From positions 1,736,001-1,800,000 of the forward strand of contig OZ218956.1 of NCBI GenBank assembly GCA_965112735.1: a stretch of 64,000 bases of DNA, in the 5' to 3' direction. This DNA comes from Phaeosaccion multiseriatum. Its lineage: Eukaryota; Protista; Ochrophyta, other classes. Below, in pieces: positions 51,103 through 63,600 of this stretch. Every line of letters begins with the position of its first letter. Within the stretch, counting starts at the first letter, position 1. Position numbers and translations under genes: made by a program. The notes beneath the pieces are model-generated. The model was not told the origin of the DNA. It did no database searches and saw only the letters and a program-made list of their open reading frames with translations.

Positions 51103-51538
51103 GCTGCTTTGGTGCCGGTGCTGCTCCTCTCCTCCCTCCTCCGCACACAGAGCGGAGAGTCCTGGCGAGGTTCTGGGGCTGTGAGCACCGCCGGGGCTCC
51201 TACGACCCTTTCGCCTACTGCTACTACCGCTCCTGGTCTTTCGCCTCTCCTTCTCTATAGAGGACGTGTCTCGTGGCCTCCTTGCTGTCGCTCCCTCCCT
51301 CTCCATTCGCCCGCGGGGGGAGGCTTAATGACTTATGGGAATCTACATTACGTATGGGTAGGACGTGAATTTTAGATTTCCTCTCTTTCTCCCTTTCCCC
51401 AGACCTATTCCCTCTCTCTCTCTCCCTCTACCCGTTTCTCTTCTCTCTCTCTGTGCTGTCACTCTGCCATACTCTCTTCTCCCTCTCTCTCTGTGTGTGT
51501 TTCTCTCCCTCTGCCCTTGCAGAGACCTCCTTCCTGCG

Positions 51539-53836
51539 ATGCCAGGCTCCCGCCTCGAGAGGGGTGGGGGTTGGGCAGCGGCCGCAGCCGCCGCAGCAGC
51601 TGCGCTCCTGCTGATGGCATCCCCAGTCGATGGATTGATCCCAAATCTGGCTCGGCCGGGAGGGGCGGGAAGGGGCTTGGCGCCCTGTTGGAGCAGCAGC
51701 AGTGGCAGCACAAATGGAGGCATTAATGATGCACCGACAGGAGCGACAGACGGGCATCTTTCCACACCAGGATCGGAAGCGTCGGTAGGAGGAGGAGTGG
51801 GGTTGGAAGGAGGGGCGATTAGTGGTCGCAGATCAGTGTCGCGGCGGATGGGAGAGAGAATTGGAAAGCAGTGGCAAGAGCAGTACGACAAGGCGAAAAC
51901 CACAATAGACAATCTGCTGGGCGATGTGGGCGTGGAGGTGCCGCAAATGCAGGTGGCCTTGGAGAGGATGCGGAGACCGAGGACGAATCGTCGTCTGGAG
52001 AAGCTGCAGGCGCAGTTTCGGGAGAGCATACTGAAGCAAGTGCCTGGGGGAAGCACGTCACGGAACATGACGGCCCTGGAGGAAGAGGCAGCCTTGGCCG
52101 CTTTTACGGAGGGGACAGAGGGGTACGAGTCCTATCTATCCACCATCATCCCTTCCACAGACATGTCCAGCCCCGATCGGCACATTCTGGTGGTGACCAC
52201 AGCGGCGCTTCCCTGGATGACCGGCACCAGTGTCAACCCCTTACTGCGGGCCGCGTACCTATGTCGCGGACGCGAGGCAGGCAAGGTGACGATTATGCTA
52301 CCGTGGCTGGAGGACAAGAAGGACCAAGCGCAGGTCTTTACCCATGATACTTTCTTCGACTCGGCAGAGGAGCAGCAAGAGGTGGTGACCAAATGGCTCA
52401 TCGCCGCCAACTTGGAGGAGGAGGTGGCCAAGCTCAAGTTTGTGTGGTACGATGCGCGCTACTTGGGCTTCACGGGGTCAATCTTTCCCATGGGGGACAT
52501 TACCCGCCTGGTGCCGGACGAGGAGGCGGACGTGTGCATCATGGAAGAGCCCGAGCATTTGAACTGGTATCGCGCCACGGGGGTGAATTGGGCCCACAAG
52601 TTTGAGCATGTGGTGGGTATTATCCACACCAACTATGCGTTTTACACCTCCAAGGAAGAGGCTACGGCGGCCTGGAGCGGGCAGCTCAAGGAGAATTGGG
52701 TGCTGGGCTTTAACAAGCTCATGGCCCGGGCGTACTGCGACAAGGTGGTCAAGCTTAGTGCCACACTGCAGGTGTTCGCCAAGGAGAAGGAGAGTGTCTG
52801 CAATGTGCATGGCGTGCGGGAAGGATTCTTGGAGGTGGGCGACGCGGTGAAGCGCCACAAGGAGGGGAGCCACCACCGAGGAGAGCGACTAAAGCAGGAC
52901 GCAGGGGCGTACATGCTGGGGAAAATGCTGTGGGAAAAGGGCTACGATCGCCTCTTTGACTTTATGGCCGACGCCGTTGAGGAGTTCGGCCAAGAGGCGG
53001 CTTTCCCCATTGATATTTACGGACACGGGCCCGAGTCGGAGCTCATCCAGGCGGGCGCGAAAGAGAAGGGCGTGCCGGCCACCTTCCACCCCGCCATTGA
53101 CCACGCAGCGCTGGGCAAGTACAGGGTCTTCGTCAACCCCAGCGTGAGCGAGGTGCTCTGTACCACTGTGGCGGAGGCGCTGGCCATGGGCAAGTGGGTG
53201 GTCATTGCGAGGCACCCCTCCAACGAGTTCTTCTACCAGTTCTCCAATTGCCTGCCTTTTGACACGCTGACAGAGTTTCGAGACGCAATCAGCAAGGCCC
53301 TGTCCGAGGACCCGAAACCCTTGCCGGAGGACCAGCGGCGCAGCCTCACGTGGGAGGCGGCCACAGAGAGACTTGTGGAGGCGTCTAAGGTGACGGTGCG
53401 GGAGGAGAAGCAGCGGCGGGCAGACTTGGACAACATGGCCTGGACCTTCCACTACCATCTAGGGGCGGGGGAGAGGGGGGATATTGTGCGCAAGTTCTTG
53501 CTGGGGGGCGTGGTGGCAGACCAAAACGCATTTACAGCGGCCAAGTACGACGAGTTTGACCCCGAGGTGTTGGAGAGGAGGAGGAAGAGGAAGGTCTTCT
53601 TGGCCTCTGTGCGTTCTGTGCCGAGAAAGGCGCTGAAGCGGCTGGGGACTGCCAAGCCTGTGACCCCTTGGGTGGGCCTAGGGGGAGTGGCGTCGTGGGA
53701 GGCACAGCAGTCGCAGACAGAGATGGCAGAGACAGAAGAGACGGAAGAGGCAGATGGTACCACTGACGACGCGGCGGAGGAGGGGAACTCGGAAGAGGCA
53801 GAGCATGGGGGGGATCCACTACCGCGAGAAGAGTAG
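51539..53836 (+). CDS. DGD: Digalactosyldiacylglycerol synthase (GT4), probably plastid-targeted, intronless CDS
   Basis: Motifs VVTTAALPWMTGTSVNPLLRAAYL, EEPEHLNWY, VVGIIHTNY, CNVHGVR, GKMLWEKG, FVNPSVSEVLCTTVAEALAMGK, HPSNEFF, LTWEAATERL. Hydrophobic N-terminal stretch ending LLLMASPVDG|LIP followed by a transit-like region. The upstream part of the tracked ORF (51365-51521) is a pyrimidine tract ending in CAG, likely a 5'UTR intron. Confidence 0.95.
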   Translation: MPGSRLERGGGWAAAAAAAAAALLLMASPVDGLIPNLARPGGAGRGLAPCWSSSSGSTNGGINDAPTGATDGHLSTPGSEASVGGGVGLEGGAISGRRSVSRRMGERIGKQWQEQYDKAKTTIDNLLGDVGVEVPQMQVALERMRRPRTNRRLEKLQAQFRESILKQVPGGSTSRNMTALEEEAALAAFTEGTEGYESYLSTIIPSTDMSSPDRHILVVTTAALPWMTGTSVNPLLRAAYLCRGREAGKVTIMLPWLEDKKDQAQVFTHDTFFDSAEEQQEVVTKWLIAANLEEEVAKLKFVWYDARYLGFTGSIFPMGDITRLVPDEEADVCIMEEPEHLNWYRATGVNWAHKFEHVVGIIHTNYAFYTSKEEATAAWSGQLKENWVLGFNKLMARAYCDKVVKLSATLQVFAKEKESVCNVHGVREGFLEVGDAVKRHKEGSHHRGERLKQDAGAYMLGKMLWEKGYDRLFDFMADAVEEFGQEAAFPIDIYGHGPESELIQAGAKEKGVPATFHPAIDHAALGKYRVFVNPSVSEVLCTTVAEALAMGKWVVIARHPSNEFFYQFSNCLPFDTLTEFRDAISKALSEDPKPLPEDQRRSLTWEAATERLVEASKVTVREEKQRRADLDNMAWTFHYHLGAGERGDIVRKFLLGGVVADQNAFTAAKYDEFDPEVLERRRKRKVFLASVRSVPRKALKRLGTAKPVTPWVGLGGVASWEAQQSQTEMAETEETEEADGTTDDAAEEGNSEEAEHGGDPLPREE

Positions 53837-54711
53837 CATGGCATTGCACCAAAGCTTGGGATTTGGGGTTTTCTTTCTACACGGCGCACACCCACACCAC
53901 TTGTTCGGCCTCTTCCATCCCCACCCACACGTGTGCCATGCACATGTGCGTAACCATAAGTGTGGCTCTGATTTGTGGGTTTTGCTTTTATTTTTTATTT
54001 TGTTCCAAAAGGGGGAGGAGGTTACGACGGTGGGAGCTGCCTGCAGAGGGGAGAGAGAGGGAGAGGGGGAGGGGGGCCAGCAGGGTTTGCGGGCCGAGGA
54101 GGAGGATGGGGGTCGGGGAGTTTTTCCCTTCCCCCTTTCTCACTAGACTGTACAAACAACAACTTCACTTTGCAATAGATCGTTAATTTACAATACTATT
54201 CTTTAGCTTTGTCAACCAATGGAAGAACAAAACAAAAACAAAAACAAAGACTTTTCTTTTCCCGAGCGAGTTTTTTTTATTGATCGAAAACGTATTTTCA
54301 AGTAGCGGAGGATAGACAGATGGAAAGGAGAAAACGGAACGTGGGAGGCAAGGGTCTACGTACGAGGCTCACCCCGCCGGGGTACAAGGAGTCAGCCATA
54401 AGCAACCAGTGCGGAAAGAGGAGGGCGGAAGAGATTGAAGAGAATCGAAAGAGAAAGGAGTGGAAGAAAAACCCGGGAAGAAAAATGCAAACTCAAAAAA
54501 ACTCCGGTAGCTGTGGATTGTATGACCAACACGCCTTTGACGTCATTTCCTCCTTTTTTTTTTCCTTTCCTCCTCTTCCACCTTTTCTTCTTTAAGAAGG
54601 TCTTTCCCTTCCCACGATCCCAGCCCCACCGAAGCAGCAGCCGCCGCAGACGCAGCAGCAACAGAAGCCTCAGGTGCAGTGACAGAAGGAGGACCCAGAA
54701 GCATTGGAAGG

Positions 54712-57700
54712 ATGCCGCCCGCAATCACCCACGATGTGGTGGAGCTGGTCAACATTCAGAGCAGCAAGCCGGAAGTTGTGGACGCTTCGGTCGACCACAT
54801 CAAAGGGTCGGACTACTACAAGCCGGGATACTGCCCACCTGATGAGCCTATCAGCGAGGTCGATGAACGAGACAAGGTATGCGCGCCTTTCCTCATGATC
54901 TGCGAAAGATCTTTCATGAGACACGTCAGAATGACTTTCTTTCATCGCCCCCCCCCCTCCAATGACAGGGCACTCCTGATGATTGGATTCCCCGCCATCC
55001 GGAGCTGGTTCGCCTGACCGGCCGCCACCCTTTCAACGTGGAGGTAAGCTTTCCCAGGCATGTATTTCCAGACGCTGCGGTGAATTAGCTATTACGTGCT
55101 CATTTTTATTCCTACTTCACAGCCGCCCATCTACAGGGAGTTTGACCATGGATTCATATCCCCTACGAGCCTGCATTACGTGCGCAATCACGGAGCCGCC
55201 CCTACAGGAATGGATTGGGACACACACGTCATTAACATTGGAGGGCTTGTGGACCGACCGATGAAGATGACAATGGCTCAGCTTACGGGAGGAGACTTTG
55301 AGATTGTCACGCTGCCCGTCACCCTGGTCTGTGCGGGCAACCGCCGCAAGGAGGAGAATGTGGTCAAGCAGGTGAGCCAAGAGATATTGTGGTGGTGCCG
55401 TGTCTTTAGTGTGGTGTTGCGATGCACGTGTGGTGAACTAACTGATTTCGCGCGAATTTACACGTTCGTGTAGGGTCTTGGGTTTTCGTGGGGACCCGCT
55501 GCCGTGTCCACAGCACTGTGGACGGGAGTCTGGCTCAAGGACATCCTCAAGCATGTGGGCATCAAGAGCATCGAGGACGGCGCGAATCACGTGTGCCTCG
55601 TTGGAACAGAGATGCTGCCCGGGGGCTTGTATGGTACCAGCATTCGCAGAGATGTGGCTCTTAGCGAGGACGACGACGTGCTCATTGCCTTCATGCAGGT
55701 ATGATAGAGTTTAATGCAGTTCAATGTCTCGAAGGAGGAGCAGGGGGTTGGGGAGAAAGCAGCACCGGGGAAACGGTTTGAGCCTCGACAAGAGTTGTCT
55801 CGCCTCGACCAGGGCGTCGCATCAGGCTCCAGGGAGAGAGGATGGGAGGCCGATCATCTCATCACCTGCCCCGCCACGGCACGCTCTCACCTCCGCACTT
55901 GCCCCACGTTACTGCGATTACGCACGTCCGCAAGCCTCTGACCTGCCCATACACCCCGCCCTCCGTTTCACCACGCCCTCTTTTTCTCCTCTCTTCTCAT
56001 CTCTCTCATGCAGAATGGCAAGCGACTGGCAATTGACCACGGGTACCCGGTCCGAGTCATCATCCCCGGCTACATCGGCGGAAGGATGATCAAATGGCTC
56101 CAGGTGAGGCGGAGGGGGGCTGGCAATGGAGGAAAGGGAGAGACGGGGTTGTGCTGTCCCGAGGTTCGGAAGCTCTCTCTCGCGCTGGTGCCGTGTACAA
56201 GCTGACCTCCCGCGGCCCCTCCCGTCACCCCTTTCCCTCTCCCTGGCCCCTCTTCCTCCTGTCCCTCTATAGGAGATCACGGTTACGCCCGAGGAGAGCG
56301 AGAACTACTACCACTACTTCGACAACCGCGTGCTGCCCCCTCAGGTGGACGCTGAGAAGGCATTGGCCGAGCGATGGTGGCACAAGCCCCAATACATCAT
56401 CAATGAGCTCAATATCAACAGCGCCACGGTGTACCCCAGGCATGATGAGGTGGGTGTGGGTGTGTCCCCCCATTTGCTTTTGCAGCTCTTGCTTTCATTT
56501 ATTATTGTTGTTGTTGTTGTTGTTGTTGGTCGTGTGTGCTCCAATTGCTGAGTGCTGAAAGAACAATGCCTTCTCCATCTGCTCTCTTTTCCTTCTCTCC
56601 CGTCCGTCCGTCCGTCCGTCCGTCTGTGCATCCGTCTCCTTCCGCCACCCAACCAACCAACCAACCCAACCAACAGATTCTGAAGGTGTCCGCCGCCGAG
56701 ACGTACACCATCAAGGGCTACTGCTACGGAGGGGGGGGCATTGCCATCACGAGGATGGAGGTCTCTTTCGACGATGGAGACACGTGGGAACTTTGCGACC
56801 TCATGGTACGAGAGGAGAGGAGAGGGAGGGGAAGAGGGAGCGGGAGGGCATCCATCCGTTTCATTTCCAGTTTATTTTGATCTCGCCCGAGCGCCGCATG
56901 CAGAGGATATGTACGAAGCAGGGGGTAGGGGAGGGGTTTTCGGCACTGCAAGTGGATGGGAGGAATGGACCGAGTCTGTCAGTCTGTCAGTCAGTCGGTC
57001 GATCGGTCGGACGGTCGGTCGGTCGGTCAGACGGACACATGCTCGCTCCCCACCAATACCTGATGCACTCCCTCTCCATCCCTCCCTCCCTCCCTGAACC
57101 GGCCGGCCTCTCTGCCGGCCTCTGTCTGTCTGTACGTCTGTCCGTCTGTCCGTCTGTACCTGTCGCCTGGCTGTCTGGCTGTCTGTCTGGCTGTCTGTCT
57201 GTCTGTCTGTCTATCTTTGACTTCTCTCCCTCGTTGCAGATTCCGGAGAAGCCCCGCCCCACGGGCAAGCACTGGTGCTGGGTGTTCTGGCAGTACGAGG
57301 TGGATGTCGTGCGTCTGCTGAACTGCGCGGAGATCCTGTGCCGAGGCTGGCAGGGGCAGAACACGCAGCCCAACAAGCTGACCTGGAATCTGTTGGGAAT
57401 GATGAACAACAGGTAACACACACAGATGCACATGGACGCACATCCACACACGCACACACATACACACATACATACACAAACGCGCGCGAACGTATACACG
57501 CACACGCACACATACATTCACACACGCGCAACATGCACACAAAATAACATGAGCACATGCTCACGTACCACCCCCCCCCCCCCACACACACAACAGTTGC
57601 TTCCGCGTCAAGATCCACCCCCACCGCGATGAGGAATCTGGGGAGGCAGCCCTGCGCTTCGAGCACCCCACCCAGCCCGGAGCGCAGCCCGGAGGATGGA

Positions 57701-57741
57701 TGTTGAACATGAAGCCCAAGGATACGCCCATTGCGCTTTAA
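54712..57741 (+). CDS. Nitrate reductase-type molybdoenzyme with Moco and dimerisation domains only (475 aa, 9 exons)
   Basis: Exons 54712-54876, 54969-55043, 55123-55371, 55474-55698, 56014-56103, 56273-56449, 56677-56805, 57240-57412 and 57597-57741, all GT-AG and in frame. Motifs [117 protein letters not shown], then TAA 12 codons later. Confidence 0.92.
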
Positions 57742-57902
57742 TTGCTCGTTTCAGAGTCTTGGGGGAGTCGAGTTCGTGGAACCGTAGAACTCCAGCCGGC
57801 CCGTCCCCTACTTGGCTTCCTTCGAGGCTGTGGGTAGGTGGGTCGGCCTACCCCGCACAAGAGTTATGGGGATGAGAGGGTGGGTGGAGAGGGGGGTAGG
57901 GA

Positions 57903-57944
<42 letters not shown>

Positions 57945-58650
57945 AGGCATGACGGAGGGGAGGGTGGAAGGGAAGGTGCATGAGCATGCTGAAGAGATTG
58001 ATTCTTGCCCTGGTCCCTTTCGGCTTTGGTACACATGGACCGATATTCGAAGGGAGGGCCAGACAGTCAATGTCAGCAGCGCACACCATCAAATTGGCCT
58101 GTGCACGTCAAAAGTTCAGTGGTAAGGAAGGTTAAGAGGAAGCGTAGCAAGAGAGGGGTAGGAACAACAAAACACCAGCGTCAAAAACACAAGAGGATCG
58201 TGAGGGGAGAAGGGTGCAGTAGTTTAAGTGTATCATCACAGCAGGAGCGGAGGTGTCCACAGCGAGTCAAAACACAGGGACGAGGTTGAACACGACGGGA
58301 GGGATGCGCTCGCTCCCAAAGGAAGGAGGCGCCGTTTATTTTTTGTTTTTTTGAATGAAAACGAGTTACTCAGAAAAGCAGAAAAGGGGAGAAAAGGATC
58401 TTAGCAACACAGCAAGAGTTGGGGGGTGGCAGCATCTTGCAGCCAACAATTGTCGGGCCCCTGAGGAACCCCATTATCACGAACAGAGTCACACACCCTA
58501 CAACCCACCGTCCTGAAACTTGGGATCGATCCAATCCGAGTACTTCATGACGAACCAAGGCTCCCCCCTCCCCCGCCATCCTCCTCTTCATCCGCTCGTC
58601 GCATGAAATGGACAAAAGAGCTACTTCAATGTTACTCGACTTCTTAGGAG

Positions 58651-60090
58651 CTAAATGTTACTCGATTTCTTGGGTTTGACGCATACGGTGGCTCCATATA
58701 CAGCCAACGGCTTGTCCGGCTCAAGTTGTGTCCATGAGGTGTGGACGTCTTGATACCCCACGGTGGCCAAAGTGCCTTCCAAAGAATCTGCCAAGAGGGA
58801 GGGACGGAGGGAGGGGGTGAGCATGCGGTACAAGTTGGGGAATAAGTCAAGGAGAAGGGGCACCGCAAGAGAGGACACAAGACGAAAGAAGAGTCAAGAG
58901 ATTGGAAGGAAGACGAGAGAAGACAATAGGTCTTCTGCCAGGCCCCGAAAACAGCTCTCCACTCCCCATACAAGGCAAATCAATCTATAAATCAATCAAA
59001 CAATGTGCGGCTGTGTGTACGCAGTGTGTGTGCGATTCCATCCCTTCACCCTATCGCCTGTCTTGCTCTACCCTTGCTCTGTCTGCCCATTGCTGCCTTC
59101 CTTGCCTTGGTCCAGGTTCTTGAACTTGTTTCGAACGAGGGGGAGCTGAGGCCCGAATAGGGTGTCAAACACCCGGAGGTTATGCCCAGCGACCATTTGG
59201 CCCCCGGGCTTGAGAACACGTAGGCACTCCCCGAAGGAGTAGGGCAGCGAAGACCAGAAGTAGAAGCAGTGGAGTGAATGAATGACATCCACTGAGTCGT
59301 CGGGAAGGGGGATGGGGTCATTCATCGAGCTGCAAATGATGTCTGTATGAACTCCGCTCTTTTCCTGCGCAGAGGGGGGGGGGGGGGGTAATTTAAATTC
59401 CTCGACTCGACTCGATGGAAGCTCCATTCAAAACTCGAAACCCCCTTTCTTTTCCCCTCTCTGTGCACCTCGATCCTTCTCGTACCTTCCCTTCGGAATC
59501 GAGCCATGACTTCATCTCTCGGCAGCAGTCCTCTGAGTAGTCTAGCCCCACGAGCTTGGCCCCTCTTTCCCCCTTCCCTTCTCCTCCCCCCGCGTCGGTG
59601 GTGAGCTTCTGCAGTCGCTCGAGGCACGCCTTGTAGCCCACGCCGCCACCGAAGCCTAATTCAAGCACTGAACAAGGATGGGGGGGGTTGGAGAGCGTCA
59701 AGCGGGTTGAGGGAGTGTTTGATCACTAATCTTGACGGTGACATACCTACCTTGGCTACTGGCTGTCAGCGGAAGCTTGGAGACTATGTCTTGGGCACTT
59801 TTCGTGTTTCCCCCTGTCATAAAGTTGAACATCTTCTGCTGGTAGTGGTCCCCAGTCGGCACCGGGTCACTGAGGTGAGTTGCTACCCATGACGCAAGCA
59901 CTGCATCTCCCTGGATCGTCTCCATACCCTCCTTCCCTAAGCCAGAATCGAAAAAGTCAAACATGATGTCCAGCTTTGTCTTAAGCTCCCCTGTGGGAGA
60001 AGTGTACGGGGCTTTGTGCGAGGAGGACGCCATGGCCGACCAGGAAGTCGCTTGACAAAAAGCCCTACTCCAGCTGCTAAATAGTCGCAT
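58651..60090 (-). CDS. Class I SAM-dependent methyltransferase (Methyltransf_11-like), possible mitochondrial presequence, 4 exons
   Basis: Exons approx. 60090-59750, 59668-59485, 59364-59106 and 58787-58651. Motif I VLELGFGGG, LVGLDYS, PLPDDSVDVIHS..CFYFW, ECLRVLKPGG. The N-terminus MRLFSSWSRAFCQATSWSA is Arg/Ser-rich with no acidic residues. Confidence 0.88.
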
Positions 60091-60339: not shown

Positions 60340-62004
60340 ATGCCTGACTCGTGCGTGCCGCTCTCCTTCTTACTGGGAAGCCACTACGGCGGGTACTTGC
60401 AAGCGATCGACAATGACAAGTCCATGACCAAGCTCAAGCGGCCCTCGCCGCAAAAGTTGTTCGTGGGTGTGGATGCCACTCGGCGGCAAGAGCTCGCCAC
60501 GCAGTTGCTGGCGCGGAGAGGGGAGGATCCAGAGTACGATGCACTGGTGGACATGGCGCTTCTATCGGGACAACAGTCTCAGACCAAGGGCCACAAGGCT
60601 CGGAGAAGGAGGAGAAGGACTGTGGGTCAACGCATCAAGGAATCGTGGGAGAAGGAGGCCGACGCAGAGGAGCGGTACCGTCCAGCTCCGCCATTTCTGG
60701 AGCTTCAAAGTAAGCGCAAGCAAGTGTACACAAAGAAGGGCGAGCATCTGATTGGTATCACCAGCGAGGAGCAGCTGAGGAAGCAATCCGCAATGCGTCT
60801 GTCGAGACGGCAGGTGGAAGCGCAAGAGAGGTGGTTCCGCCTAACCGAGCAAGACCGTAACGACTGGAGGCGTAAGCGAACTCTCTCCGTGAAACTGCAA
60901 GAGACCGCACACAAACGTAATATGCTGGATGCCCGCTTTGACTTCGACCGAGACCTGAAGGAAAAGACCCTCTATGGCGAAGTCGAGGGAGAAAGGACGG
61001 ATGGGGAATGGCCTGAATGTGGTGGGCTCGGCAGTAATGTCCCTTCCCCTTCTACGTGTTCCCAGGAGCTGGCGGATACTGTAGCGAGTGCCCTATCCCT
61101 CCCATTGCCGCGACAAGCCAGGCCCAGTAGGCTGGGCCGTGCCACCGCTTCGGCATCAACATCCAAGCTCGGAGTGCAACGGGCCCAGCAGAACGAGCAG
61201 GAGCTCGAGGAGATGAGAGAGAGGAACCAGATGAAGCGTCTCGAGAAAGAGCTGAGAAGACTCGTGCTGCACGCCTGCACTGGCAGTAGCGGCGGCAAGG
61301 GCACCACTGGTGCTAGCGAGGGCCATACTGAGGGTGGTGGGGGTGGTGGGGATGCTGGAGGAGGACAACAAGCAGCAGCACCAGAAACCAGAGCAGCAGG
61401 AGCAGCGGCAGGAGCAGGACGAGGAGCAAGTACGCCTGGGGTGGGCCCCAGCATGGGTCTGCGCAGCATCGGACAGGTCGTTCGGTCCCTGGACATGGAG
61501 GCCATCAAGCAACAGCTCCCTCCAGACATCCTGCGCCAGCTCATCATCCACCAGCGAGCCGTCGCCAAATGCCATGGTAGTAGCAGCAGTGCAGCTCGTA
61601 ACAGCGGTGGCGGTGATGCAGCTGCTGCCACCACCCCTGCCAATGCTATTGCGATTGCTGCTGTCGGGAAGAAGAACGATTCTCTAGGGGCTTCGTCTTC
61701 GTCGGGTTTGGAACAGGTGGCACTACTGCCTGAGAATGGTGAGGTCAACGCTGCTGAGGGTAGTAATGCTCTCATCGACCCGTCTATCTTCGATCTCGCC
61801 TGGAGGCAGACCCTTGCCGCACCCCCGACCCTTGATCTTAGGGTGGATAAGGAGCCGCCCAGAGTCATGACCGGCCTAAGAGGCGGGCAGCAGCATCAAT
61901 GCAGCAGGTCTATGAGTCGCCAAGGAGGGGTGTTCTCGGGCGGTGGAAGGGAGGCAAGTGAAGGGGGAGGAAGAGGGGGAAGTGGAGAGGGAGGAGGAGG
62001 TGGG

Positions 62005-62040
<36 letters not shown>

Positions 62041-62618
62041 GCTACTTCAGCAGTGGCCGGGAGGGGTGGGGGGGACAGAGCAGGCGCTCCCTGGGGCCCC
62101 TCGGAGCCAGCGAGGAGTAGCGATAGCGACCCTCCTGGCGCTGCGGTGCGCCACCTCGGCTCTCCTCAAAGCCGGAGAGGAGGTCCCAGCCGAGCAGCAT
62201 TAGCAGGAGGAGGAGGAGGAGGAGGAGGAGGAGGAGGAGGAGGAGGAGGAGTGACAGCAGCGACGGACCCTTCGTCTCCCGTTAAGGTCAAAGCGTCGAG
62301 GGGTAGAGCAGCAACAGCAGCAGGAGGAGCAGGACTGGGCGGCGGTGGTGGTGGTGCTCCGAAGCTCAAGGTCAAGACCACAGTAGCCTTCGGAGTAACC
62401 TCGCCGGCAAAGGCCGCTCAAGGGCCGCCTGCCCTCGCAGTGGATGGAGGGACTGCGTTCGTTAGGGATGGGCGCACTGTGCTACTGCCGGTGCTTCAGG
62501 GAATCGCTTGGGGGTCGCGCAGCGAGCCTCTGTTGGCAACAACACCACCAACAGTACCAACAACAACAGCAACAACAGCAACCACAACGACAGCGGGGAG
62601 TCGGGATTGCGAGCAGCC

Positions 62619-62649
<31 letters not shown>

Positions 62650-63600
62650 GCCCATGAGCCCGACGGCGACAACGGAGTGCTGCTCACGTCCAGCAGCATG
62701 GCGAGTACCGAATCGCAGGATTGCCCACCGACGTCAAGCCTCCTCACTACGCTCCACGACGAAGGGGGTCACAGCGTGTGCAGTTACGCCTCGACCGACG
62801 CGAGCTTGCGCCTCGCTGGGGCAACAGCAGCGGCGGTAGGAGGCCAGCTAGAGGGCCCCGCACTCTCTCCTCCCCCGTGCTATTCACCAGCAGCAGGAGC
62901 AGTAGCAGGAGCGGTGCCAGCAGCAGCAACTGTCGATCACTTTGCGAGCCCCGTGGATCTGCTGACTCACCCCCCCGGCGGGCCGTGCTTTGACCTTTCG
63001 GGAGGAGGCTCCCTTGCTGCCGCGGCATCGTCCGTGGCCTCAAGTGAATTCGGAGCGAACGGTAGTGATTTCGGAGATGATGCGGTTGATGATGCTGAGG
63101 GGGTGCCGCGACGCGGGCAGCAGGGGCAGGAGCACGAGCGGCCGCAACAGGAGGAGCAGGAGGAGGAGGAGAAGGGGGAGCAGAAGGGGCAGGAGGGAGA
63201 GAAGGGGGAAGAGGGGCAGCGGGAGGGGGAGGAGGAACTTCTTCTCCGCGTGCAATCTGCTGCTACTGTGGACACCGACGGTTGGGAGGAGCGGGAAGGG
63301 CAAGTGTGGAGGGAGGAAGGGCAGCATCAACAACAACAACAACACCAACAACAGCAGCAGCAGTTGGTGATACAGCCAGAGAGTGGTGAGACAATGCTAC
63401 AGGTCACCGTGCTGATGGACGAGGCCGACGAGAGCGAGTACAGGGAGGGGGAAGGGTCCCCGCTGCCGTCGGAGCAGCAGCTCCAGCAAGGGGAGGAGGA
63501 GGAGGAGGAGGAGGAGGAGGAGGAGGAGGAGGAGGAGGAGAAGGAGGAGAAGGAGGAGGAGGAGGAGGAGGAGGAGGAGGAGGAGGAGGAGGAGGAGTAG
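60340..63600 (+). CDS. Hypothetical 1086 aa protein: charged helical N-terminal region, long low-complexity remainder, poly-Glu tail
   Basis: A 3.26 kb uninterrupted ORF with natural-looking composition over the first ~300 aa, head-to-head with the methyltransferase. No family recognised, and the true 3' end is uncertain. Confidence 0.65.

Follow-up and report, generated by a model that had tools for sequence, protein, structure and literature searches.

The question raised by this locus is whether the catalytic half of a eukaryotic nitrate reductase (NR) can stand as a gene of its own and, if so, from where its product obtains electrons. Eukaryotic NR serves in textbooks as the example of an invariant Mo-heme-FAD fusion, and all work on its isolated Mo fragment has used laboratory constructs. 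In the window, that is the entire 64-kb stretch of Phaeosaccion multiseriatum DNA analyzed here, positions 54712-57741 on the plus strand hold a genuine and intact gene encoding only an N-terminal extension, a Mo-molybdopterin domain and a dimerisation domain. We consider it about as probable as a coin toss (roughly 50%) that the encoded protein is a dimeric nitrate-reducing subunit which would receive electrons in trans and would have arisen by loss of the C-terminal domains.

Splicing of nine exons gives a 1428-nt open reading frame (475 codons plus TAA at 57739-57741), and all introns are of the GT..AG type, which bears out the nine lesion-free, in-frame exons and the 475 amino acids of an earlier sequence-only reading. 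Exon 1 (54712-54876) provides the start codon and the N-terminal extension (amino acids 1-55), which aligns with the N-termini of full-length relatives; its GT..AG joint is seen in RNA contigs (54874/54967). Exon 2 (54969-55043; amino acids 56-80), flanked by RNA joints on both sides, encodes the conserved segment GTPDDW...RLTGRHPFN and is 96% identical to Discosporangium in tblastn. The Mo-molybdopterin domain starts in exon 3 (55123-55371; amino acids 81-163; PF00174, E = 1e-10), which holds the equivalents of Arg89 and Arg144 and the Mo-ligating Cys in CAGNRRKE and aligns to residues 59-141 of 2BIH (E = 2.5e-18); it continues in exon 4 (55474-55698; amino acids 164-238; PF00174, E = 2e-13) and ends, as defined by Pfam, in exon 5 (56014-56103; amino acids 239-268, DHGYPVR...GGRMIKW; PF00174, E = 2e-11), both with RNA joints. 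Exon 6 (56273-56449; amino acids 269-327) contains the Asn272 equivalent in YFDNRVLP and aligns to 2BIH residues 247-301 (E = 4e-10). The dimerisation domain is encoded by exon 7 (56677-56805; amino acids 328-370; PF03404, E = 2e-13) and, across a GT..AG RNA joint at 56804/57239, by exon 8 (57240-57412; amino acids 371-428; PF03404, E = 1e-13; 2BIH residues 374-420), which includes the Met427 equivalent in WNLLGMMNN. Exon 9 (57597-57741; amino acids 428-475) runs from FEHPTQPG to GGWM and aligns to the end of 2BII; at its end full-length relatives run on into hinge 1 and cytochrome b5, and the window protein stops 12 residues beyond GGWM, with the C-terminus TPIAL. Scored exon by exon, Pfam recognized PF00174 in exons 3-5, PF03404 in exons 7-8 and no other domain, in agreement with the proposed restriction to Mo and dimer domains.

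Expression as spliced RNA was seen in metatranscriptome contigs of a close relative, a different organism from the P. multiseriatum strain. These contigs show the GT..AG joints of introns 1-5 and 7, and intron 6 is implied by one contig that covers 56271-56449 and goes on into exon 7; RNA support thus comprises introns 1-7, and intron 8, which borders a masked CA repeat, is taken from the gene model. Upstream, the contigs align from 54622, giving a 5' untranslated region of at least 54622..54711, and differences between relative and window are concentrated 5' of the ATG. Downstream, one contig is colinear with the window over 57599-57763 and thereby runs past the position of the stop codon into a homologous 3' untranslated region, a colinearity of position only, of which the relative's own letters at 57739-57741 form no part. 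The 46 letters that follow in this contig match the window in diverged form once a 2-base deletion is allowed for, and the 3' untranslated region therefore extends over at least 57742..57809.

An open reading frame ending just where hinge 1 is expected might also be an artefact, with the true gene continuing into heme and FAD exons that are located at a distance or were dropped when the assembly was wrongly joined between 57.7 and 58.6 kb. Short-read contigs do break at a (GA)n run near 57891-57950, and the junction has no independent bridge. However, a single DNA contig (57599-57890) contains the stop codon and about 150 nt beyond it, in the relative the RNA reads through this region with nothing spliced out, and there is no usable donor site before the TAA, as had been suspected from the letters. 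The missing parts are not found elsewhere in the window either: a search for HPGG or FAD/NADH motifs in six frames of all 64 kb was negative, tblastn gave a best E value of 0.5 when the C-terminal halves of eight closely related full-length enzymes served as queries, and similarity to b5 or FAD domains was absent within 54 kb upstream and 6 kb downstream of the gene. The absence of downstream b5 and FAD exons claimed by the earlier reading was thus upheld, and so was its convergent methyltransferase gene (PF08241, minus strand, 59071-59427). We regard the artefact as very improbable. Decayed b5 or FAD remnants after the stop, considered separately, were not detected by tblastn; one alignment did extend six codons beyond the stop, which is not significant. 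None of the genes in the neighbourhood is nitrate-related.

Two-domain architecture is also what is expected of a plant-type sulfite oxidase, and plant sulfite oxidase (1OGP) is likewise a eukaryotic Mo and dimerisation protein that has neither heme nor flavin. Its pocket, however, is of the sulfite type, its sequence is much less closely related, and the window protein lacks an SKL-like C-terminus. Moreover, the plant enzyme, being an oxidase, hands its electrons on to O2, while a reductase has to be supplied with them by a donor. For each testable exon the best match among solved structures is the Mo fragment of Pichia angusta NR (2BIH/2BII); for exon 3 the E value is 2e-18 to this fragment versus 1e-5 to plant sulfite oxidase, and exon 6 has an NR match only. 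In the alignment to the Pichia fragment the equivalents of Cys139, Arg89, Arg144, Asn272 and Met427 are all present, with the Cys of CAGNRRKE aligned to Cys139, and the Tyr and Arg of a sulfite-type pocket are replaced by Asn and Met at the Asn272 and Met427 positions, respectively. By sequence comparison the protein is thus of the NR type and not a sulfite oxidase, in line with the signatures and the retained Mo ligand pointed out earlier. Regarding the features that define EUKNR, it possesses the Oxidored_molyb domain with the Mo-ligating Cys, the Mo-co dimerisation domain, a nitrate-type pocket and a placement among NRs; the open reading frame ends before a cytochrome b5 heme domain, and FAD_binding_6 and NAD_binding_1 are absent from it and from all 64 kb.

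The sequence-only reading had further taken deviations near the pocket as a sign of altered function, and this did not hold: the two strings concerned, of 10 and 11 residues, recur in the same or nearly the same form in full-length enzymes of Chrysoparadoxa, brown algae and P0151. At each of the ten positions checked for Moco binding, substrate binding and catalysis, the protein has the same residue as full-length enzymes of the brown-alga/xanthophyte (PX) group. This bears on the idea that the protein, with an unchanged site, now serves mainly another task, such as production of NO from nitrite or the handling of another oxyanion, with a different physiological donor. NRs are able to reduce nitrite to NO (PMC6128913), and the clearly changed pockets of older Mo-only clades indicate that a new function can follow the loss of domains. 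Nevertheless, the pocket residues here are entirely those of assimilatory enzymes and the protein shows no accelerated evolution (see below), and we consider such a changed role quite unlikely.

The descent of the gene is well resolved. Over amino acids 15-465 the protein is 65-70% identical to full-length NRs of brown algae and their kin, and the same range across the Mo and dimer region holds for the canonical NAD(P)H-dependent enzymes compared (Chrysoparadoxa australica P0269, Discosporangium, Scytosiphon, Saccharina, Ascophyllum, Heterosigma, and Pichia 2BIH/2BII). It resembles these enzymes in its N-terminal extension and in identical Moco-binding, nitrate-binding and catalytic residues, and differs from them in lacking hinge 1, cytochrome b5, hinge 2 and the FAD and NADH domains. 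Phylogenetic analysis grouped it with full-length PX enzymes; its sister is the full-length Chrysoparadoxa NR (support 99/96), and this pair is nested within a 100/100 clade of full-length PX enzymes. The gene is that of an ochrophyte of the PX group, and identity and tree position together identify it, on phylogenetic grounds, as a lineage-specific truncation of the canonical enzyme and not a sulfite oxidase. The whole 475-amino-acid protein was compared locally with fetched proteins, and databases were searched by exon; the window's own protein was not among the best matches in the protein collections searched. In the tree, the protein's branch is about as long as the divergence of the neighbouring gene would lead one to expect, with no sign of acceleration; the best match to that neighbour in the protein collections is only 64% identical. 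We also considered truncation at an old exon border, as Discosporangium has a border 14 residues after GGWM, near the stop of the window gene. This coincidence carries no weight, because the sister Chrysoparadoxa exon continues into b5 at this point and the position of intron 1 is the only one common to the three genes.

A lineage-specific truncation such as this one might be a young functionless remnant: a rearrangement could have removed the 3' half and left a stump that is transcribed but idle. Against this, the window gene and its counterpart in the relative differ by 27 synonymous and only 2 non-synonymous substitutions, both conservative (Ile to Val), which corresponds to a dN/dS of about 0.02 and is incompatible with neutrality (P = 1.6e-15). 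The gene is thus under strong purifying selection, as expected for the maintained stand-alone gene that had been proposed. Since the relative shares the truncated 3' end at a synonymous divergence of about 0.14, this constraint acted after the loss of the 3' half. In addition, splice sites and catalytic residues are all intact, and an idle remnant is in our view highly unlikely.

Judged by database sequences, the Mo-only form is not unique to this lineage, and counterparts occur in several algal groups. NR-type proteins consisting of PF00174 and PF03404 only, with a canonical NR pocket and an end soon after GGW[MF], are found in Prymnesium polylepis (A0A7S4HD63, P0166, 456 amino acids), in an abundant marine picoeukaryote (P0220, 576 amino acids) and in the Amorphochlora group; the haptophyte form is represented by an mRNA with its own stop and 3' untranslated region, and the picoeukaryote gene is intronless. 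In contrast to the close kinship with PX enzymes, these proteins are only 46-56% identical to the window protein and are located elsewhere in the NR tree, and their origins therefore look separate from that of the window gene. Diatom Mo-only paralogues (Nitzschia inconspicua P0213, Cylindrotheca P0224 and others) are likewise NR-derived, stand-alone, two-domain proteins, but they constitute a conserved clade of considerable age whose pocket has been remodelled, with the Met427 equivalent changed to Gln, CAGNRRKE to CCGNRRKE and DNR to DNK; none of these changes is present in the window protein. A common origin of the window gene and the diatom clade was rejected by an AU test (p-AU 1.5e-56), in which the group to be tested was chosen once the tree was already known.

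Among described eukaryotic enzymes, our literature search for Mo-only NRs retrieved only two cases, and no assay of a natural Mo-only NR. NR3 of Chattonella subsalsa is a natural, expressed algal NR lacking the heme domain; like the window protein it has lost a redox domain deemed essential, and for both proteins one has to ask how electrons are supplied and whether mixed multimers form (PMC6128913). Unlike the window protein, NR3 keeps the FAD/NADH domains and a hinge 1 with a 14-3-3 motif (PMC6128913); its direct fusion of the Mo and dimer domains to FAD/NADH is not what we see here. The second case is a foraminiferal, sulfite-oxidase-like putative NR without FAD/NAD(P)H domains, a role judged unsupported by the authors who discussed it; it is similarly a member of the sulfite oxidase/NR family that lacks a flavin module and was considered an NR needing outside electrons, but by its description it is set apart by a different lineage and a denitrification context (PMC8153729).

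How, then, would the half enzyme work? As it has no flavin domain, direct use of NAD(P)H is not expected. According to our preferred reading, a five-domain NR of this lineage would have lost hinge 1, cytochrome b5, hinge 2 and the FAD/NADH domains, probably independently of the Mo-only derivatives in other groups. The remaining protein, which covers the same stretch as the crystallised Mo fragment from Pichia, up to and including GGWM, is predicted to bind Moco and to dimerise, and its Mo centre may still reduce nitrate to nitrite, and possibly nitrite to NO. The two electrons required would be supplied in trans by a separate carrier, most plausibly a cytochrome b5/b5-reductase-type module by analogy to the mARC/NOFNiR systems, or alternatively ferredoxin, flavodoxin or another carrier of low potential. 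NR fragments show partial activities with alternative donors (cited in PMC6128913). In a more far-reaching version, the alga would have no full-length NR at all and would assimilate nitrate by a naturally split two-component enzyme, consisting of the Mo subunit and a separately encoded b5-flavin reductase or a photosynthetic carrier like ferredoxin; the Mo-only genes that recur among other marine algae would represent systems of this kind, too. We regard this version as unlikely.

Alternatively, the half protein might heterodimerise with a full-length NR of the same cell and borrow its heme and FAD across the dimer, or tune or limit the holoenzyme. Its dimerisation domain is intact and conserved, and intragenic complementation between apoenzyme mutants of plant NR shows that electrons can cross the dimer. 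A possible full-length partner is suggested by a second, closely similar NR-like transcript in the same metatranscriptome as the relative's half gene, which matches exon 8 and a 12-residue string, departs exactly after GGWM (57702) and then differs for at least 255 nt. This transcript could represent a full-length paralogue, but it may also come from another species in the sample. In the DNA runs of the P. multiseriatum genome itself, read depth at 57658-57702 was that of a single copy and there was no second contig; a close full-length paralogue thus seems to be absent, and a more diverged one is possible. Taken together, a role as partner subunit appears rather unlikely, though it deserves some weight. 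Alternative splicing from within exon 9 had also been considered for the second transcript; it does not match 57599-57657, and the 30 letters after the point of departure are absent from the window, which identifies it as the product of another gene or organism and not as an isoform. When exon 8 was used to look for transcripts of the relative in JGI metagenomes, the best match was 56% identical. Without hinge 1, a half protein acting as partner would escape any regulation exerted through this segment.

The gene described here is a natural version of the Mo fragment known as a laboratory construct, and it is under strong selection. Together with its independent counterparts in diatoms, haptophytes and an abundant marine picoeukaryote, it suggests that the catalytic half by itself has proved useful to algae more than once. 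Should the protein reduce nitrate with electrons drawn from another carrier, this would affect estimates of phytoplankton nitrate use and NO production that are derived from genes, since these consider full-length genes only, and the half enzyme would offer a simple natural system for studying how a Mo centre is fed. If, on the other hand, the protein only modulates a full-length partner, it would be a regulator of a novel type, acting on a key enzyme of nitrogen metabolism.

The nitrate reductase (NR) gene on the + strand was reassembled from the raw sequence and consists of nine exons (54712-54876, 54969-55043, 55123-55371, 55474-55698, 56014-56103, 56273-56449, 56677-56805, 57240-57412 and 57597-57741), which join to a 1428-nt reading frame of 475 codons ending with a TAA stop at 57739-57741; this rebuild returned the coordinates and the 475-aa length of the sequence-only reading. 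All eight introns are of the GT..AG type, and seven are in phase 0. The NR genes of Discosporangium and Chrysoparadoxa (loci L002 and L003) contain 10 to 11 introns across the same region and share only intron 1 of the eight located between 54877 and 57596; across the group, intron turnover in this gene is heavy. Short tandem repeats (GTCC/GTCT-type, CA-rich and (GA)n) crowd introns 6 to 8 and the 3' flank, with repeat-rich stretches at 56590-56640, 56960-57230, 57415-57595 and 57900-57945; these are the break points of short-read contigs, and one bin shows a very high depth.

The protein ends 12 residues past the conserved GGWM, where in the alignment its closest relatives run on into hinge 1, the HPGG cytochrome b5 and the FAD/NADH domains. 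As the sequence-only reading had suggested, the redox half is missing downstream: a six-frame motif scan found no credible HPGG or flavin motif in the window, and when the C-terminal halves of eight closely related full-length NRs served as tblastn queries, only noise (E above 0.5) was returned for b5, FAD or NADH coding in the window. Non-coding, single-copy DNA and a (GA)n run separate the gene from the convergent methyltransferase noticed earlier, which matches PF08241 on the minus strand (59071-59427). Further downstream, an uninterrupted ORF of 1086 codons (60340-63600, +) is rich in runs of Gly, Ala, Gln and Glu and has a poly-Glu tract at its end, with mirror low-complexity ORFs on the opposite strand.

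Two metatranscriptome runs (X1 and X2) contain contigs of a close relative that are approximately 90-97% identical to the gene. In these RNA contigs, introns 1, 2, 3, 4, 5 and 7 are each marked by an exact GT..AG joint, and one contig passes from exon 6 to exon 7 without a gap in its record coordinates, so that splicing of intron 6 is implied; the joint evidence thus covers introns 1-5 and 7 and, by implication, 6, while intron 8 borders a masked CA repeat. Another contig corresponds to 57599-57763 and spans the stop position, and the 46 letters that follow are a divergent version of the 3' flank, shifted by a 2-base deletion. The relative's mRNA therefore follows the genome colinearly beyond the stop and is not spliced onward to other exons, in line with the early stop proposed from the sequence. 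DNA contigs of the source organism run unbroken and at single-copy depth from 57599 to 57890 the only break being at the (GA)n run. A second NR-like transcript in the same runs, located on 55121-57702, matches exon 8 as well as the GGWM stretch, after which its continuation differs for at least 255 nt. It shares the listed differences of the first relative in exon 3, and from mid exon 4 on its identity is approximately 82-90%. This transcript may represent a full-length paralogue or originate from another species; it could also be a paralogue whose 5' part was converted, a chimeric contig or a congener. No close copy like it was found in the DNA runs of this genome.

In exons 1-6, at least 29 coding differences separate the gene from that of the relative; of those listed, 27 are synonymous and two are Ile-to-Val changes, a split with a probability of 1.6e-15 in the absence of constraint. 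Site counting yielded a dS of 0.144, a dN of 0.0029 and a dN/dS of 0.02, which is not near 1 and agrees with the earlier suggestion of a maintained gene. Because the truncated 3' end is common to the source alga and its relative, constraint has acted on the truncated gene.

Relatives for local comparison were collected by querying exon 3 against 1.84 billion representative proteins and by word-index searches that started from the nearest full-length NRs; database queries were thus single exons and nearest relatives, and the whole 475-aa protein was compared locally. It is 70% identical to the full-length NR of Chrysoparadoxa australica (850 aa), 69.8% to the full-length product (833 aa) of a transcript in a public run, 65-69% to brown-algal full-length NRs (817-836 aa) and 61% to that of Heterosigma. 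A careful maximum-likelihood analysis of the Mo and dimer region (51 rows) made the protein sister to the Chrysoparadoxa NR (support 99/96), and both nest among full-length enzymes of the PX group (brown-alga/xanthophyte ochrophytes) in a clade with 100/100 support, which places the protein with NR rather than with sulfite oxidase; FastTree with 145 rows gave the same placement. The neighbouring single-exon gene for a digalactosyldiacylglycerol synthase of family GT4 (51365-53836, +), with a long low-complexity N-terminal extension, has its best matches in Phaeothamnion (64%), Tribonema (60%) and Chrysoparadoxa (58%), and the source is therefore a PX-group alga without close sequenced kin. The branch length of the half-enzyme is in keeping with this distance and requires no acceleration.

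With Pfam scored per exon, exons 3-5 carry the molybdopterin-binding domain (PF00174) and exons 7-8 the dimerisation domain (PF03404); no further Pfam domains were detected in the exons. The NR Mo fragment of Pichia angusta (2BIH/2BII) was the top solved-structure match for every exon tested; exon 3 matched it with E = 2e-18 versus 1e-5 for plant sulfite oxidase, and exon 6 matched only nitrate reductase. With the published Pichia numbering taken as chain index + 10 from the exon alignments, equivalents of Arg89, Cys139 (the Mo ligand), Arg144, Asn272 and Met427 are all present, in accordance with the NR-type pocket and retained Mo-ligating Cys read from the motifs. The same reading had also taken deviations near the pocket to fit altered function; the strings flagged for this ([21 protein letters not shown]) are nearly unchanged in full-length relatives. 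Ten positions for Moco, substrate and catalysis, together with the motifs [16 protein letters not shown] and [10 protein letters not shown], are identical or near-identical between the protein and these relatives, and the pocket is therefore not a changed one.

The protein covers, through GGWM, the region of the crystallised recombinant Pichia Mo fragment. Partial activities of such fragments with artificial donors are established by work cited in PMC6128913. Judged from its sequence, the protein is thus most likely a Moco-containing dimer that would reduce nitrate at an unchanged Mo centre with external electrons. Candidate donors would be a separate cytochrome b5 or b5-reductase-type module, by analogy with the mARC and NOFNiR systems, a low-potential carrier, or, in a mixed dimer, the heme of a full-length partner. 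No account of a nitrate reductase that is naturally Mo-only turned up in the literature searched: Chattonella NR3 lacks the heme domain and keeps the flavin part (PMC6128913), a foraminiferal sulfite-oxidase-like candidate lacks the flavin part (PMC8153729), and a broad pathway survey describes other chimeras, the Mo-only form not being among them (PMC6400420).

The Mo-only form is not unique to this gene; 33 fetched relatives span the full Mo and dimer region without b5 or FAD similarity. Partial architectures, which may include incomplete genes, are common among the fetched proteins, such as Mo plus FAD/NADH without b5 (P0162, P0164, P0175 and P0184 in the haptophyte group, P0210 and P0230 in diatoms) and Mo plus b5 without flavin domains, of approximately 550 aa, in several arbuscular mycorrhizal fungi (Glomeromycotina P0170, P0173, P0191 and others). 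Some Mo-only relatives are certainly real, namely a haptophyte mRNA, a picoeukaryote gene and a Nitzschia gene. The 1.9 kb mRNA of Prymnesium polylepis, found in three samples, encodes a 456-aa protein and has its own stop and an approximately 460-nt 3'UTR without flavin-domain coding; the protein shares 88% identity with a haptophyte enzyme in which the FAD domain does follow. The genome of Nitzschia inconspicua contains a 491-aa stand-alone gene, and an abundant marine picoeukaryote has an intronless stand-alone gene for a protein of 576 aa (P0220), listed in 217 collection blocks. These three are scattered over separate parts of the tree, and grouping of the window gene with the diatom Mo-only clade was rejected (p-AU 1.5e-56).

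Two kinds of Mo-only proteins can be distinguished. The nitrate pocket is untouched in the window gene, the haptophyte mRNA, the picoeukaryote gene and the Amorphochlora group, and it is remodelled in older clades, i.e. the diatoms (P0213, P0246, P0258, P0241, P0249, P0224) and a second group (P0197, P0204, P0206). Both of these clades show the same changes, with the Met427 equivalent replaced by Gln, CAGNRRKE by CCGNRRKE and DNR by DNK. Their union as one group was rejected (p-AU 9e-5), and the shared changes look like remodelling that converged once the redox domains had been lost. The picoeukaryote gene (loci L004 and L005) is tightly packed, flanked by an NPHP4-like ciliary gene and small ORFs, and is present in very many marine metagenomes. 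This wide occurrence makes the gene a good second system for the role of stand-alone NR Mo subunits.
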